From Macrostomum hystrix (Eukaryota; Animalia; Platyhelminthes): a DNA stretch of 64,000 bases. Below the pieces are notes generated by a model that did not search any database, was not told where the DNA came from, and was given only the letters and a program-made list of their open reading frames with translations. Within the stretch, counting starts at the first letter, position 1, and every line of letters begins with the position of its first letter. The translations under genes and the position numbers were made by a program. The stretch is taken from the NCBI GenBank assembly GCA_950097015.1, contig CATNEN010000033.1, positions 930,001 through 994,000 of the forward strand, in the 5' to 3' direction. This document shows positions 34,826-43,899 of this stretch, piece by piece.

Positions 34826-37800
34826 TTTTATACCCTAATGGTCAAACTTTTAGCTGAAGTTAAGCTTAAGAAATTGTTTAAAGCCAAAAAAGGCTTAGGC
34901 CAAATTTCTTTCATCAAAATGGGTGGAATCACAAGGCCCAAGAAAGATTTAAGCAAACTTTTACAAATGGCATAGAGCTAACACCGTGTCCCAAAACAAG
35001 TTAATGTTAACATGGTTTGATATATTATAACATTTTTAAGTAAAAAAGAAAGTTATTAAATAAAGTACTAAAATACTACATTTTTATAGATAGGCCAAAA
35101 GCTTGGGTTATGCAAGACTACAGCTGGCATATAGAAAGTAGCAATTTTCTATAAACAACTAGTGCACTATTGTATAGACAGCTTAATTCTAAATTATAGA
35201 CCAACAGTGAACAGTTATTAAAGAGCTGAATTAAATAAATAATACAGTGCAAACATATGCCAGGAACTGGGGCATAGGTCAGCTAAAGCGAATGCTAAAT
35301 AGATGAGTTAACAAGCAAACGAATATTGCAGGACAGAATAGCTAAATAAATTACATTCATAATGCTACTATAAAATAAATAATGCAAATAAAATGTGTAC
35401 AAGCCAAGTAATTTAGACATTATTTGTACAAGCAAATATCGTTCTTGGTATTGATAGTTTAGATTTTAGATTAATTATCGCTTTTAAATAAATTTGCTAA
35501 TATCCATGACCATGCCGAGCCGAAGCGGACGATATTAATAACGGCGCTAACAAATAAGTACAGGTTAAAGTGTTCGAAAAAAAATATTGAATGCAGCACT
35601 AACCAATAATATCTTACTTATTATAACAAAACATTATTAGACAATTTAAATATTTAATCAATATTTTTTAAAGATTGTATATTTCCTCGTTTTAAATTAT
35701 AATATGAAATTCTTGATTGACCGTCAAGGCAACGTTTAACAAAAGGCTCTTCGCTTCTTCTTAAAATTCAGAGCACGAATTAAAAAAATCTACCGATTGC
35801 ATATGCTTGAGAATAGCCTTGAATTGAGAATATCGAGCGTTACCGAGCGTTTCGATGATGAAAATGAAGAATATTCTATACCGAAGTAGCGAAATAGTTG
35901 AAATAGCGATTACTGACAAATGTTTCGCTTTTTTAATGATCTGGCGAAATTTTTCCCTTTGTGGTGCATCTGTTCAATACTACTTCTCGCGATAATTCAA
36001 ATTAGGGCTATTCTGCCTTTAGTAAAAAAGGTAAAACCTATTTTCATAATTTACTTCTCATTAATATCGGACAATGCAAAACTCGTAGCTTAGCATACCT
36101 TAGATCAATATCTGTCGTACCTTACACCAATACCTAAGATCAATAAGAGCTGTTATTTTTTATTGCCTTCGTTTCAATCGTTTTTATGGCTTATATACAT
36201 TTAATTATATAAGCCATAGGTGTAGGCCATGCGAACTCCTAAAAATGAAAAATTTTAGCCAGTTTATCTTAGCAAGAAGCTTTTTGCAATAAAATGCTGG
36301 CACATGTACAGAGATTCTTTCGTACTTTCCGTCGACCACTTTATCAGCTATTGCTGGGGTTAGCCTATTGAATGTATGAAGGTATAATAATAATAATAAT
36401 AGTTACGTCCCACGCCGACCACGAAAAGTGGCGAAGAGGGGGGAGCGTCAAATCTCGCGCTTCAGTGCCAGGTCTCTGATGTGCTTCACGCCTGCCGCCT
36501 GGCTGGGTGCTCGGGCGTCTTCAAAAAGTCGGTCGATTTAGCGGGCTGATCGTCCCTGGCCGCGCCTGCGCGGTCCCTGCGAGGTCCACAGCAGGACATC
36601 CTGCAGCGGCTCTGGGCAGTATGCTTCGGCGCGGATGACATGCCCGGCCAGCCGCAGGCTGACTCAGCAGGACAGAAGGCCGCGTTAGGCGCGCACGCTG
36701 GTAGAGGGACTTGGTTGTCTCGCTGCCAGGGCCGCGGCGGGCACCGAAAGCGGCGCGAACTAGGGCCGCGTGTGCCGCGTCGAGCTGCGCCTCGAGCACC
36801 CCGGTCATCGTCCAGGTCTCAGCATTGTACAACAGGGCGGTCTCGACAACCGCCTGGAACAGCTGGGACCTGGCGCCGTTCGACAGGGCCTCGGAGAGCA
36901 GCACCGCCCACACAGAACGATAGGCGGCACAGGCCTTGCCGCGTCGTCTCGCCAGGTCGTCGCCCACGTCAGGCACCAGTCCGCCAAGATAGACGAACTG
37001 ACGGCACTTCGGGAGCACGGTCCCGGGGCCGTTACCGTCTCTTAGTCGAATCTCGGCAGGTAGGTTTTGCGGCAGGCCGGCCGGAACCCATTCTGCTCGT
37101 ACCGCAGAAACGAGTCCAGCACAGGCTGTAACCGTGCTAACAGCACCCGGTTGAACAGCTTCGCGGTACAGGACATAAGCGAGATCCCGCGATGCTCCTC
37201 CTTCCGCGTAGTGCCCGGCTTCTTCGGGATGCCGACGATGGTTGCCTGGGTCCACTCGCGGGGCGCAGGGCCTCCAGCCAGGTTCACAACGTTCACAACG
37301 GTCCAGACGACCCTGTTCTGCCGTTCAGGCCCGACAGAGGTGACAGCCCGGATCGCGTCGTCAACAGCGGCTTTCTGTCGACTTGCGTAGGCGTCTGCCA
37401 GGGCCTTCTCGGCATCGGATGTCGGTCGCCTGGCTCGCCGCAGATGTTCGACAGTGCGGCGGGCCTCACGGACCTCCGGGTCGCTCGCCCAAACTGGAAG
37501 TTGCCGTGACGCGGGTTCCATAAGCGGCAGAGTCTTGGCAGCGGCAGTGGCGATGGCTGAGTTGATTGTGCTGTAGTCCGGCGCCTGTGCTGATCCCAGA
37601 GCGGTCGCAAAGGCGTACGCAAACCTGCTGCGGGTGCCTGGGTCTTGCAAGGCGCGAAAGTACCTTCTTCTAGGGCGTTTTGGTGGACGGTACAGCGGAT
37701 CAGAGAGCCTCAGGTCGCAGTAGAACAGGCGATGGTCGGACCGGACAGCCAAGGGTTTCATTGTGTCGCAGTTCTGCAGCCGGCTGCGTTCGCGATGGCG

Positions 37801-38269
37801 AATCAGCACGTGGTCGAGCTGCGCCAAGCGGGTCGTGGCGAATCGGCCTCGCGCGTTCCGCCTCCTTCGCTTGCAGCCGGCGAAGGTCGCCAGCCGGTTG
37901 GGCGGTTTGCGGAAGCGCGTGTTGGCTGACACCAGGTCGAGCCTCGCCATCAGGTCCGCTAGCGCGGCGGTGTTGGCGTTCTGGCGTGGCGACACAAACG
38001 GGCAGCGCTGGGACCGCGGTGCTACAGCGTTGAGATCACCAAGCATCACCACAGTGTCGCGGTGCGCCACCATCTCGAGCTGCTCCGACAGGAACTCGAA
38101 GAATTCCTGCACCTCCTGCTGATGGGCAGCTGTGGGAGCGTACGCACAGAAAAGCCGCACATTGCGGCGACGTAGTCTCACGTCCACGCGCAGCAGTCGG
38201 GCTGACAGGCTGACGCAGCAGATGCTCTCGCGTAGCCGTGGTCCGACAAGCACGCCGACTCCTCCGCGG

Positions 38270-38337
38270 GCCTGTCAAACGGAGCTCCCTTCACGTGGGG
38301 ACAGGTGCCACAGACGCGTTCTGTGCCAAATGCTCCG
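38270..38337 (+). ncRNA. HDV-like self-cleaving ribozyme at the 5' end of the Ingi-like element
   Basis: Hand fold: P1 GCCTGTC (38270-76)/GACAGGT (38300-06) with G1-U wobble; P2 CGGAGC (38280-85)/GCTCCG (38332-37); P3 CCC/GGG; L3 TTCACGT; single-bp P1.1 C38292-G38307; P4 CACAGA/TCTGTG; J4/2 CCAAAT with candidate catalytic C38327. Confidence 0.85.
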
Positions 38338-38357
38338 GCTCCCCGGATGTCGCTTCG

Positions 38358-41300
38358 ATGTCCGCACCCCAACCCGCTGGCGGGTTTTTGGGAGGGTGGC
38401 AGGCCAACCCCGACTGGTCTCGCCGCCGGGTTCTGTTGTCGGGGGATGTTGAGACGAACCCCGGTCCTATCCAGGCCGATCTCCGTGTCCTGCAGTGGAA
38501 CCTAAACGGGCTACAGGCGCGTCGACCGGCACTTGAACGGCTGCTGGAGGAAAACAAAATAGACATCGCCCTTCTGCAGGAATCTAACCTCACCGAGAGA
38601 GAGCCCACACCCAAGTTCCGCGGCTACACCGTCCACCGCCGCGACCGGGTCGTCCACCGGGGGGGTGGCGGTCACCATGGAGGCCTGCTCACTCTGGTCA
38701 AACAAGGCCTGGCCCATGAAGAGGTGGAGGCGGGTCTGCGGACCCCCGTCAACGCGGCCCTGGAGCAGCTGACCATCCGTCTGTTCGGGGACAAGTCCAA
38801 GCCGCTGCACCTCACCAACCTCTACCGCCCACCTGTACGGCACTCCGACGCGGACGACCGGGACGGGGCCCTACACACCAACGGCTGGCCCACCGATGGG
38901 CACTGGCTGCTGATGGGCGACCTCAACGCTCACGGTAGCTGGGACCCGAATGCTGATCCGGACTCCCCGGGAAGCGAGCTCGACGATTGGCTGAGCGACC
39001 ACGGCTGGATGGCGCTCAACGACGGCAGTGCCACTAGAGTGAGCCCGGGGGGTGGTGAGTCGGCGCCCGACGTGTCGCTCTGCAGTGCTGTCTGGTCCAG
39101 CCGGATCAGCTGGCGCGTGGGGGACGCCATGGGGTCGGACCACCTTCCTCTGCTGCTGACCATCGCCTTCACCCAAACCCATGAACGCCGCCGCCCAGCT
39201 GGCTTCAACCTGCGACGGGCGGACTGGCCGACCTACGCGACGCGGGCGGGTGATTTTTTCCTGGGCTGGCCGGCGGACGGCTTTCGGTCCGTGGAGGCCG
39301 CCAATGCAGACTTCTGCCGCAGGATCCTGGAAGCGGCGAGCTGCATCCCCAAGGGCAGAGTTAAGAAGGCCAAGAGCTGGTGGGACGAGCGTTGCAGACG
39401 GGCCCAGGGCGCCACTCGCGGCGCCTTAGCGGCAGCCAGAGCCGCGCCAGGTGACTTGGAAGCCGCGGCGAGGTACCGCGCTGCCCGCGACCAAGCCGAC
39501 CGAGTGTACCAACAGGCGAAGACCGAGTCCTGGCAAGGTTTCGTCGCGGAGCTGTCGGCCAGGTCCCCAGACAACAAGGTCTGGAACACCATCAGGGCCC
39601 TCGATGGCCGAGCGCATGAGGGCCCTTTGACGACCTGCAGACGCGGCCGATGACGAGGACCCTGGTGGCAGCGATCGACTTCTTCGCTGCTTTTGACCGA
39701 ACCTGGCGCCTCGGGGTGCTTCGGCAACTGGCTCGAGCGAGCGCCCCGGGACGGTGGCTGCGCTGGATCCGCGCGTTTCTGGCTGACCGGAGAGCTCGAG
39801 TGCGCTGGGTTGATAGCATGAGCCGCCCCAAGATCCTGAAGGAGGGAGTCCCGCAAGGCAGTCCGTTGTCCCCGCTGCTGTTCAACATTGCGACCTGTAC
39901 CCTGCCAGCCGCCATCCAGTCCGCCGCCCCGCTCTGTAAGCCGCTGCAATACGCCGATGACCTGTCCATCAAGACGTCGGCGGGCACTGCGGCGGCAGCG
40001 GCGGAGAACATGCAACAAGCGTTGGAAGCGGCAGAAACCTGGTGCCAGCAGCATCACTTCGAACTGGCCCCAAACAAGACCGAGGCCCTGCTGGTGAGTA
40101 CCCATCCAGTGGAGAATACCGAGGCCTTCAGCAACTCTGTTCAGCTCCAGGTCGGTGGGCAGACGATCAGCTGCCAGAAGGAGGCGCGCATCCTGGGGGT
40201 GTTCGTGGACTCCCAGGTCACCTTCGCCGAGCAGGCCCGCCGCGCGCTGGCTGCCATGCGGAGCCGGCTCAACGCCCTGCGGGCTGTGGCTTCCCGCCGG
40301 TGGGGAGCTGACGCTGATACGCTTCGTCGGCTCTACTGCGGCTACGTTCGCCCGGCGGGGCTGTACGCGGCAGAGGTGTGGTGGCCTTTTCTGGCTCGCA
40401 CCCACCGGGAGCGGTTGGAGTCGATGAATTACGCCGCGGCCCGGGCTATCACCGGTGTCAGTCCCGGTGCCCGGGCTGCTGCGCTGATCGCGGACGCCGG
40501 GCTACAGCCCCTGGACGTCATTTGCCGGATTCGGGCGGCTGAGCTCTACCTGCGATGCCGCCAGTTCAGCGAGGACCACCCGCTGCGGAAGCTAACCGAC
40601 GCCCCGCCGAACACGACGAGACTGCGGTCGAGAGGGGGCGGGACCCGCGGGTGCTGGAGAGAGACGGCGCTTGCGGCCCTGGAGGAGGCGGGATGTCACG
40701 CTAGGAACATCGAGGGGTGCGTTCCGCTCTCCTGCCTGCACCGGCCGTGGACCCCTCATCACTCGGCCCGCTTCGCTGCGGCGGATGCTGGGCGCGAGGA
40801 GCCCCCGGAGGTCCGACGCGCGAGGGCCTTAGAACTGCTGGACTCCCTTCGCCGGAGCGACCCGCCGTACCTCCAAATCTGGACAGACGGGGCGGCGGAA
40901 GAAGGCTTCAGAAATGGCGGAGGAGGCTACATCATCCGGCGTCAAGCTATCGGCCCCGACGTCAAGGGCAGTATCCCGACCGGACGGTGGACCAGTTCGA
41001 CCACTTCAGAAGCGGCCGCGGCGGCGGCGGGGCTCGAGGCAGCCCTCGGTCTCCTTCGGGGGAAGCCGAGCTCGGCGATCTGGCTGCTGTTCGACTCACG
41101 AGCCCTGTTCCAGCGGCTGCAGTCCTCGACCAAGTGCCTGCAAGACCACGCCACCGCGCAAGCCGCGATCCTGCTCCAACAGCTGGCCAGCGAGCACAGG
41201 CCAACGGTCATCTGGATCCCAGGGCATGCAGGCCTTGCGCTTAACGAGGCCGCCGATGAGCTGGCCCGGAGAGGGTCCGCCATGCAGCAAGACCCCCAGC

Positions 41301-41731
41301 CAGTCCCCGTGTCGGCCGCCAGGGCCGCCCTCCGTCGCCAGGGACGAGCGGCCGAATTGGCTGAGTATAATCAGCTGGTTCCGGCGGACCACCCCCACAG
41401 GCTCTGCGGCGGAGCGCAGTTCATCCACCGGCCAGGCTGGCCGCGGACGGCCGAGGTGGCGCTGTACCAGCTTCGGGCCAACCGGGCGCCCTTCCTGCAG
41501 GCCACCCGGCATCGTTGGGGCCGCGACCCAACCGCTGCCTGCCCGCACTGCAATGCCCCCGAAGAAGACACCCGGCATTTCCTGTTAGACTGCCCCAGGT
41601 GGGCGGAGGAGCGCCGGCTTCACATCCCAGAGGCTATCAACGGCTCTATGTCCCCACTGCAGAACGACCCAGAAGGGGTGCGGGCCTTCGTCGAGGCGTC
41701 GGGCGCGCTGGCGCGCCCCCCGTATGCCTAG
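38358..41731 (+). pseudogene. Ingi-like polyprotein (2A-APE-RT-RNase H) broken by an internal deletion and frameshift near 39610-39650
   Basis: First in-frame ATG after the ribozyme is at 38358 and the frame runs to TGA at 39653. A second frame (FDDLQTRPMTRTLVAAIDF...) runs to 41731. The early RT motifs (PKPGK, YRPISL, Q.GFR) are absent at the junction. Confidence 0.85.
38412..38468 (+). other. 2A-like ribosome-skipping (StopGo) peptide DWSRRRVLLSGDVETNPG|P
   Basis: Exact match to the D(V/I)ExNPGP consensus at 38445-38468, in frame and immediately upstream of the APE domain. Confidence 0.88.
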
Positions 41732-42269
41732 CTTGGGATCCGAACCAACACACACACACACACTCCTCCGCGGCCTCTGCTGTCCGCTGACGTGTAGTGC
41801 AGCGTCCAGCCGCTCCCCAGATCCTCACGGTGTAGGCCAGCAGTGATTGACACCTCCTGCAGCTAGCATGACGAGGTCCAGCCGCAGGTCAGATGCCAGC
41901 TTTGCGAGCATGCCCCTTCTCCAGGCAGACTTTAGTTGAAGGTTGCTAGCCTTAGAGCGCGGTTTGTAAAGGCTGGGGCCCGATGTTGGTGGGCCTCACG
42001 GTCCCCGGCGCCACCCGGCGGAGCCGGCTGGGCGGGGGTCGGCAGATCAGTGTTGCCAGCAGATTGGCGGAGGCGGCCTTTCATTCGCCCTCGCCAGTTG
42101 CGTTCCCTTCGCCGCTCGGTGCGACGTCGGGTGCTTCGCTGTCCACGCCGTCCTCCCGACCTGCCGCACTTGGCAGCCGCAGCACCAGGGCGCGGCTCTC
42201 CGTGTTGGCCGAGGCAAGCGCTGGGGGCTCCAGCGTCACCAGGAGGCGCGGCATTTATTTGCACTAGGG

Positions 42270-42432
42270 TGCAAATAATTTAACACTGCAAATAATTTAA
42301 CACTGCAAATAATTTAACACTGCAAATAATTTAACACTGCAAATAATTTAACACTGCAAATAATTTAACACTGCAAATAATTTAACACTGCAAATAATTT
42401 AACACTGCAAATAATTTAACACTGCAAATAAG
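42270..42432. repeat. 17-bp minisatellite (TGCAAATAATTTAACAC), ~9 copies
   Basis: Tandem copies abutting the 5' end of the RTE-like element. Confidence 0.95.
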
Positions 42433-42837: not shown

Positions 42838-43352
42838 CTTCGAATAGGTCCTGTCTGTCCTGTTCGAATAGGTCCTGTCTGTCCTGTTCGAATAGGTCCT
42901 GTCTGTCCTGTTCGAATAGGTCCTGTCTGTCCTGTTCGAATAGGTCCTGTCTGTCCTGTTCGAATAGGTCCTGTCTGTCCTGTTCGAATAGGTCCTGTCT
43001 GTCCTGTTCGAATAGGTCCTGTCTGTCCTGTTCGAATAGGTCCTGTCTGTCCTGTTCGAATAGGTCCGTCTGTCTGTCGAATAGGTCCTGTCTGTCTGTC
43101 GAATAGGTCCTGTCTGTCCTGTTCGAATAGGTCCTGTCTGTCCTGTTCGAATAGGTCCTGTCTGTCCTGTTCGAATAGGTCCTGTCTGTCCTGTTCGAAT
43201 AGGTCCTGTCTGTCCTGTTCGAATAGGTCCTGTCTGTCCTGTTCGAATAGGTCCTGTCTGTCCTGTTCGAATAGGTCCTGTCTGTCCTGCTCGAATAGGT
43301 CCTGTCTGTCCTGTTCGAATAGGTCCTGTCTGTCCTGTTCGAATAGGTCCTG
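42838..43352. repeat. 24-bp minisatellite (CGAATAGGTCCTGTCTGTCCTGTT), ~21 copies
   Basis: Tandem copies; explains ORF 42810..43370. Confidence 0.95.
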
Positions 43353-43899
43353 TATTGTCGATCTCTCCACGGTCGACTAACTCTCTAGTACTTCATCTCA
43401 TATCTCCTGTGTCCCATCTCTCACGTGTCCCATCTCTCCTATGTCTCGTCTCTCCACAGCTTCATCTCTCCACTGTGGAGATGAGACTCGATGATATGAG
43501 TTCTCGCAATATTTTCATAGGAATGAAAGTGCCCTCATATAAAAATGAAATAGATAGATATTATCAGTAACTTTTACGACCCAATCGACATAAACACTCT
43601 ATATACTATTGTGTCTAGACTGAATTTCACAGCGTGCAAACTAGCAGCTACACGTACTAGTCCAGCTTTTGTTATTGACAGACATGATGGGAATCATAAT
43701 TCATTATTGAAACAATGCAACCTATCAAGTCGTTTGGCCCAGCAGGCCTTATGTAGTCAGAATATCAAACGAGAGGAAGCGCGGGTGCACTGCAGTAGCA
43801 CAAGTGCTTCGCTGATGCAAGTCAATCGACGAAGATCATTCGCCGGTTCTGACCAGCGCCTGTCTTCCCCCGGCTATTTCCCTGTCTAGTCTCCTATTT

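Follow-up and report, generated by a model that had tools for sequence, protein, structure and literature searches.

The first 68 nucleotides of the non-LTR retrotransposon copy at 38270-41761 of the window (the whole 64-kb stretch of DNA that was analysed) very likely encode an HDV-like self-cleaving ribozyme, which would set the exact 5′ end of the element's RNA. The retrotransposon is one copy of a low-copy LINE with a single ORF of the order 2A-APE-RT-RNase H, and we give this joint reading, LINE and ribozyme together, a probability of about 0.85. The fold, its covariation and its match with the element boundary are observed; the catalytic activity is predicted by analogy with known ribozymes. 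Judged from the sequence, this is very probably a known trick that has turned up in another, new family of elements: a ribozyme that trims the RNA of the element back to exactly its first base.

Read as RNA, the plus strand of 38270-38337 is G-CCUGUC / AAA / CGGAGC / U / CCC / UUCACGU / GGG / GACAGGU / GC / CACAGA-CGCGU-UCUGUG / CCAAAU / GCUCCG, and it contains the following parts:

38270-38337, plus strand: HDV-like ribozyme fold (from the sequence), the first 68 nt of the LINE
38270-38276 (GCCTGTC) with 38300-38306 (GACAGGT), plus strand: P1, 7 bp, with the closing G1-U wobble G38270-U38306
AAA between the 5′ strands of P1 and P2, plus strand: J1/2
38280-38285 (CGGAGC) with 38332-38337 (GCTCCG), plus strand: P2, 6 bp
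38287-38289 (CCC) with 38297-38299 (GGG), plus strand: P3, 3 bp
38290-38296 (TTCACGT), plus strand: L3, 7 nt
C38292 with G38307, plus strand: P1.1, a single pair
38309-38314 (CACAGA) with 38320-38325 (TCTGTG), plus strand: P4, 6 bp with a 5-nt loop
38326-38331 (CCAAAT), plus strand: J4/2, which opens with C; the conserved C is 38326

Sequence and descriptor agree that these parts have the order of a nested double pseudoknot: P1 crosses P2, and P3 and P4 lie within P2. P1.1 is formed between L3 and J1/4, and the 3′ strand of P1 follows directly after P3. All the parts named in the helix list of the first-pass annotation (the 7-bp P1 with G1-U, the P2 of 6 bp, the P3 of 3 bp, L3 TTCACGT, the one-pair P1.1 and the P4 of 6 bp) are present.

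The start of the fold can be compared with the boundary of the element, which is given by a target site duplication (TSD):

38258-38269, plus strand: left TSD ACTCCTCCGCGG, 12 bp, an exact repeat of 41762-41773
41762-41773, plus strand: right TSD, 12 bp, directly after the (AC)n tail

Because ACTCCTCCGCGG recurs exactly right after the (AC)n tail, the insertion unit is 38270-41761, which amounts to 3492 bp; at one mismatch or fewer, 0.14 matches to the TSD are expected by chance per window. In public contigs from three runs of the same study, 38257 is followed directly by 41762, so that 3504 bases are skipped and 12 letters are common to both sides. These contigs represent the empty site, which is either an allele or a paralogue of the host repeat (approximately 98% identity), and the insertion boundaries are therefore confirmed independently. 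In another public contig the alignment ends exactly at 38270. The predicted cleavage site thus coincides with the TSD-defined element boundary, as had been proposed from the sequence before: it lies at the first base after the exact 12-bp TSD, and the empty site agrees.

The insertion resides in another LINE on the opposite strand, whose ORF (37042-38253, minus strand) has weak EN and RT Pfam matches. This host LINE is decayed (37042-38253 on the minus strand and 41774-42250), and the public contigs carry it without the insertion. The copy on C32 (L005), which is 91-93% identical to the window element, occupies the corresponding site in another copy of the host repeat; the two host copies share just 68% identity over the 149 nt that lead up to the junction (window 38124-38269). 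This hints that the same site of that host LINE family was hit more than once. Two tandem arrays were observed downstream of the insertion: one at 42262-42432, just behind it, with a unit of approximately 17 bp (CTGCAAATAATTTAACA), and one at 42838-43355 with a unit of approximately 24 bp (CCTGTTCGAATAGGTCCTGTCTGT), the latter being the source of spurious Rfam 'HIV_POL-1_SL' matches.

Behind the ribozyme, the window copy carries these parts:

38358-38441, plus strand: first in-frame ATG and leader peptide ahead of the 2A motif (from the translation)
38442-38468, plus strand: 2A (StopGo) motif GDVETNPGP (from the translation), which fits the canonical -GD(V/I)ExNPGP- (PMC3708506)
38490-39143, plus strand: APE endonuclease domain (Pfam Exo_endo_phos E=2e-12, Exo_endo_phos_2 E=8e-10)
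~39620-39624, plus strand: internal loss of ~583 bp (element nt 1351-1355; blastn against L016, L017, L018 and L022)
39659-40198, plus strand: reverse transcriptase, N-terminal part missing (Pfam RVT_1 E=5e-20, profile positions 68-202 only)
40871-41278, plus strand: RNase H domain (Pfam RNase_H E=1e-9)
41748-41761, plus strand: (AC)n 3′ tail, which is the element end (from the sequence; same tail in the C41, C1 and C2 copies)

APE and RT domains, a simple-repeat tail, a TSD and an empty site are all found, as in a LINE. The single ORF with an N-terminal 2A motif followed by APE, RT and RNase H, and with no ORF1, is the architecture of the Ingi/L1Tc type; both architecture and 2A motif fit the putative placement as Ingi-like. 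The window copy is 3.5 kb long compared to ~4.1 kb for full-length relatives, and its frame ends at 39651-39653 according to the ORF list, while intact relatives have open frames of 1372-1381 aa. The ~583 bp missing between the APE and RT regions are carried by the copies on C41, C1, C2 and C14. Since the TSD around the window copy is perfect, this loss may predate or follow the insertion. The 5′ end of the window copy is complete, as the first-pass annotation had inferred, with homology among the copies starting at G1; the element itself is not intact.

The odds are about even that the ribozyme, although real for the family, is a relic at the window locus, where a dead, internally deleted insertion inside an opposite-strand LINE would do nothing functional. 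The missing ~583 bp and the frame end at 39651 speak for this, as do the EN and RT Pfam matches of the host at 37042-38253 (minus strand). Against it, the window ribozyme differs from the intact copies at only two positions, both of them unpaired (base 2 of J1/4 and a single base in the P4 loop), and a read-through transcript should still be cut. The possibility of a relic qualifies the ribozyme reading and does not replace it.

DNA, protein and covariance-model searches of the 220-Mb assembly (42 contigs) revealed approximately 20 loci with the ribozyme motif, which belong to five subfamilies:

Family A: the window copy; the copies on C1, C2 and C41 (98-99% identical); C32 (93%); C35, C8 and C38 (older)
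Family B: two copies on C39 (L024, G000:C39:~4.711 Mb; L023, C39:~17.510 Mb) and one on C7 (L009, C7:~12.965 Mb), with 3′ ends in L198 and L199; APE 56-58% identical to that of A
Family C: C10, C39, C1, C38 and others; APE 63-65% identical to that of A; ribozyme 66 nt long
Family D: C41:3.69 Mb
Family E: C5, decayed

Protein identity between subfamilies that keep the helices goes down to 56-65%. In copies with unrelated flanks, homology begins exactly at G1. Altogether, a TSD adjoins G1 in seven independent insertions, four of family A (including the window) and three of family C. The family A copies on C41, C1 and C2 have the TSDs ACGCCTCGCAGT, ACTTACTCGGGT and ACTGCACCATCGT, respectively; in each, the left repeat adjoins G1 and the right repeat adjoins the (AC)n tail. 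The TSDs of the family C copies on C38 (ACTGCTCGCGAA) and C39 (ACGGGCGCT) both adjoin G1, and these full-size copies have an (AAC)n-type tail before the right repeat.

Several features of the insertions were seen in addition. A 193-nt insertion on C1 (L061, G000:C1:2712971-~2713163) consists of just the family C ribozyme followed by the 5′ leader as far as the 2A region; its G1 adjoins a direct repeat (ACCAGCATGGTGACAGAGTCGT) that is 12-22 bp long, and the (AAC)n-type tail is absent. Such a 3′-truncated mini-copy is unusual for target-primed reverse transcription. CGAC immediately precedes the TSD or opens it in all four family A targets (window, L002, L003 and L004: GCCGAC/T.., GCGAC/G.., GACGAC/T.. 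and GGCGAC/T..). The 3′ microsatellite differs by family, with (AC)n in A, (AAC)n in C and (AG)n in B. Together, these observations point to a short target preference that is tied to the tail repeat.

The copies were used to follow the helices through the subfamilies. Pairs were counted in a MAFFT alignment of 14 distinct sequences from subfamilies A-E, all paralogues of one genome, with the pseudoknotted structure written out. Standard pairs make up 91.4% of the cells, compared to 80.9 ± 1.1% when the 3′ partners were shuffled, and none of 500 shuffles reached the observed value. Changes on both sides are present in 11 of the 23 pairs (four in P1, three in P2 and four in P4), and 40 cells are compensated versus 15 ± 3 in the shuffles. 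Sliding the 3′ partners by one to three columns left 40-52% paired. A smaller set of nine sequences gave the same picture. For instance, position 4 of P1 is U-A in family A, with C-G in the copies on C32 and C35, and it is G-C in family C. Between families A and C, P2 pairs change from C-G to G-C, from G-C to A-U and from A-U to G-C, and between families A and B three A-U pairs of P4 are replaced by G-C or C-G. P3 shows no covariation, being CCC/GGG throughout or broken, and is uninformative. The closing pair of P1 is G-U in eight of the 14 sequences and G-C, A-U or C-G in the others.

The single-stranded parts are conserved as well. L3 has the consensus U-U-C-N-C-G-N, with T21, T22, C25 and G26 invariant in the 14 sequences, and the C-G pair of P1.1 is found in 12 of 13. 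The C that immediately follows P4 (C38326, alignment column 60) is likewise present in 12 of 13 sequences and is followed by N-A-A, making it the candidate catalytic C. As far as the alignment can tell, the unpaired core is kept as expected of HDV-like ribozymes. Two details of the first-pass annotation have to be amended. A J4/2 led by C is present, but the conserved C is 38326 and not 38327, the residue chosen there, which is A, C or T among the copies. The U-U mismatch at the top of P2, which according to that annotation may tune activity, is indeed unpaired here (T38286 faces T38331), but this position is unpaired in every family (C opposite U in B, C and D).

Broken pairs are present in L006, L007, L011 and L070/71, which look like decaying copies. 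In the family C ribozyme at L020/L068 (G000:C1:26312567-26312622), all of P4 is missing (GT-CG-CAAAGT) and P1, P2, P3 and L3 are retained; partial deletions are also seen in L072 and L073. The comparison of the 5′ ends of other copies, which had been proposed as a check, yielded compensatory changes in P1, P2 and P4 across subfamilies. Together with the TSDs adjoining G1 in the seven insertions and with the empty site, they bear out the earlier claim that the fold is real.

How the ribozyme might act can be deduced from R2, R4, RTE, Baggins and L1Tc. By analogy, the element would be transcribed inside a longer read-through RNA, in which the ribozyme would fold co-transcriptionally. The candidate C38326, next to P4, would catalyse scission immediately 5′ of G38270, and the released RNA would begin at the first base of the element. 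Target-primed reverse transcription would copy this RNA to its end, and new insertions would start at G1 after the TSD.

Family B offers a comparison for this processing model. It keeps P2, P3, L3, P4 and J4/2 with compensatory changes, and the 5′ strand of P1 is interrupted (GCCTGTGGTC); it reads GCCUGUGGUC where GCCGGUC would be needed. The three copies, which are 99% identical, share a 37-nt leader upstream of the ribozyme homologue. Their TSDs GAGTGCTACCAGC and CTCAGGTACC are located 2 and 30 nt beyond the leader, that is 39 and 67 nt upstream of the ribozyme homologue. An intact P1 would thus go along with a precise 5′ end and a disrupted P1 with an extended, heterogeneous and apparently untrimmed one, a pattern that is inferred from three copies and matches the processing model. 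Because its copies are so alike, family B evidently spread recently without precise 5′ trimming. The ribozyme is evidently not strictly required for retrotransposition, since family B spread without a canonical P1. An alternative P1 that uses the real 5′ end of family B was sought by inspection, and none is present in the 37-nt leader.

The main frame is open through the entire ribozyme in families A, B and C (38271-38468 in the window), and an in-frame ATG before the 2A motif is present only in family A (38358) and absent in B and C. Two further ATGs of family A are out of frame; one lies at 38330, within J4/2-P2, and the other at 38347. The open frame, together with the lack of an in-frame AUG ahead of the 2A motif in families B and C, led us to consider an AUG-less start of translation. 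Ribozyme and 2A peptide might then form one expression cassette: the RNA would be uncapped with a 5′-OH, translation would start without AUG in or just after the ribozyme, the 2A peptide would shed a variable leader, and family B would be a loss-of-P1 variant that still transposes with untrimmed, transduced 5′ ends. We regard this extended scheme as possible but rather doubtful. A role of the ribozyme-ended 5′ terminus in translation initiation is speculative; for other LINEs, such a role of ribozyme-terminated 5′ ends is indicated by the title of a 2011 article by Ruminski et al. (reference 12 of PMC3774820).

The 68-nt fold might also be real and selected, with HDV-like topology, and yet not cut. 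It would then act as an internal promoter or +1 definer, as a translation-initiation element or as a protein-binding site, and the 5′ end would result from initiation at G1. L1Tc sets a precedent, with promoter and ribozyme combined in its first 77 nt (PMC3383444, PMC1874656), and an internal promoter at +1 such as Pr77 in L1Tc would likewise place TSDs against G1. That family B spreads with P1 disrupted fits this explanation too, and the ORF that is open through the ribozyme, with no in-frame AUG before 2A in B and C, would fit some role in translation. However, a promoter or protein-binding site would not need a P1 that starts at +1 and has four pairs changed on both sides, a favoured G-U closing pair, a conserved C at the catalytic position and an invariant HDV-type L3. 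In addition, the 5′ end shifts upstream and becomes heterogeneous where P1 is disrupted. We therefore consider a non-cutting fold improbable and prefer the self-cleaving ribozyme.

To estimate how often such a fold arises by chance, we used our own generic HDV-type descriptor. It requires a 7-bp P1 with G1-U, a P2 of at least 5 bp, a 3-bp P3, an L3 of 6-9 nt containing C, a G in J1/4, a P4 of at least 4 bp and a J4/2 starting with C. This descriptor search, which the first-pass annotation had recommended, matches a single locus, 38270-38337, on both strands of the 64-kb window (128 kb searched). In dinucleotide-shuffled sequence, 0.22 loci are expected per window and 0.098 per 12.6 kb of GC-rich neighbourhood. 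A descriptor match anywhere in the window is unremarkable; at the TSD-fixed base it is notable. Since the match begins on one base that is set independently by the TSD, its chance is about 2e-6 to 8e-6.

The recommended check against the HDV-like and CPEB3 covariance models of Rfam was negative. Searching 10 kb and 151 bases with cmscan (Rfam release 15, E<=10) gave only noise and no HDV, CPEB3 or drz match. This is weak evidence against the fold, because the models have narrow seed alignments and cannot encode pseudoknots. An MFE fold limited to nested pairs does not stand out (z = -1.06), as expected for a pseudoknot. The covariance model R1 gives the window fold a score of 90 bits. A chance fold that is conserved through coding constraint on the open frame or through the youth of the copies could appeal to the roughly 0.2 chance descriptor matches per window, to the main frame that is open over the 68 nt, to the 98-99% identity of family A copies and to the missing Rfam match, but it is effectively refuted by the shuffle and covariation counts: the match sits on the TSD-fixed base, the helices are kept by the excess of compensated cells and collapse in slid registers, and coding constraint is unlikely with no in-frame AUG in B and C.

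If the ribozyme reading is correct, a LINE lineage of a 220-Mb genome is added to the clades with a 5′-defining HDV-like ribozyme, which are R2, R4, RTE, Baggins/LOA and L1Tc/Ingi. The ribozyme is coupled here to an N-terminal 2A peptide, as in the trypanosome L1Tc; to our knowledge, no 2A peptide has been reported for R2, R4/Dong, RTE or Baggins1. Should the RT prove to belong to the Ingi clade, the combination of ribozyme and 2A would either predate the split of kinetoplastids and animals or have been transferred between them. Testing is eased by the internal control that this genome contains, namely families with intact P1 and precise ends next to a family with disrupted P1 and extended ends. 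For annotation, the motif can be used to mark the full-length 5′ ends of the element family at its approximately 20 loci.

Relatives were also sought beyond this genome. The closest proteins elsewhere are metagenomic and have 40-48% identity, and look-alikes at the level of protein clusters are generic RT-RNase H clusters. The contigs of the metagenomic RT relatives P0003 and P0012 offer no usable 5′ end in which a ribozyme could be sought: they begin within the ORF, or the sequence upstream of it is A-rich and unrelated. When metagenome contigs were searched with an alignment of the 2A-APE region, there were 395 pattern matches, none of which was confirmed. The exact core GCYCCCTTCNCGNGGGGAC was found in more than 120 stretches of metagenome contigs, where the best covariance-model score was 23 bits and the descriptor recovered only chance cores in GC-rich contigs. 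Neither protein nor core pattern thus identified foreign relatives with the motif in metagenome contigs. At the loci of more distant LINE families (39-44% APE identity), no convincing descriptor match was seen in the sequence upstream of the ORF.

The fold shares its topology, the 7-bp P1 with G1-U and the 3-bp GC P3 with the genomic HDV and CPEB3 ribozymes (Rfam RF00094 and RF00622), as well as an L3 with U...C...C-G and the C directly 3′ of P4 that is followed by N-A-A. It departs from HDV and CPEB3 in a J4/2 of 6 nt instead of 4, in a P1.1 with just one C-G pair, in a P4 that forms a minimal hairpin of 6 bp and in the lack of a covariance-model match. Ribozymes of the HDV type that cut at the 5′ junction have been described for R2, R4/Dong, Baggins, RTE and L1Tc (PMC3774820, PMC3185411, PMC4035085), with R4, Dong, Baggins, L1Tc, RTE and the Drosophila R2 cutting at the junction itself (PMC3774820). 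As in R2, R4/Dong, RTE and Baggins1, where a 5′ double-pseudoknot ribozyme frees the element RNA from a co-transcript, no obligatory AUG is located close by (PMC3774820). R2 and R4 differ from the present element in having a restriction-like endonuclease and being site-specific in rDNA, and many R2 ribozymes differ in cutting upstream, within 28S sequence (PMC3774820).

Like the element, the LINE Ingi-1_AC of Aplysia and other animal LINEs are APE-type and have a single ORF, in which an active-type 2A motif lies 40-80 aa behind the N-terminus; a ribozyme is not mentioned for these 2A-bearing LINEs (PMC3708506). Like the L1TcRz/Pr77-hallmark ribozymes, the fold stands at the head of a single-ORF APE-RT-RNase H LINE, in its first ~70-80 nt, and the cut is predicted at +1 (PMC3185411, PMC4035085). 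Trypanosomatid ribozymes have C1, whereas +1 is G with a G-U wobble here (PMC4035085), and the present elements differ from L1Tc/ingi in their microsatellite tails of (AC)n, (AAC)n or (AG)n. With a genome of 220 Mb, the host is no trypanosomatid. L1Tc also has an N-terminal 2A after the ribozyme, and its canonical -DIEQNPGP- (PMC3708506) is identical in family C, where the 2A motif reads GDIEQNPGP.
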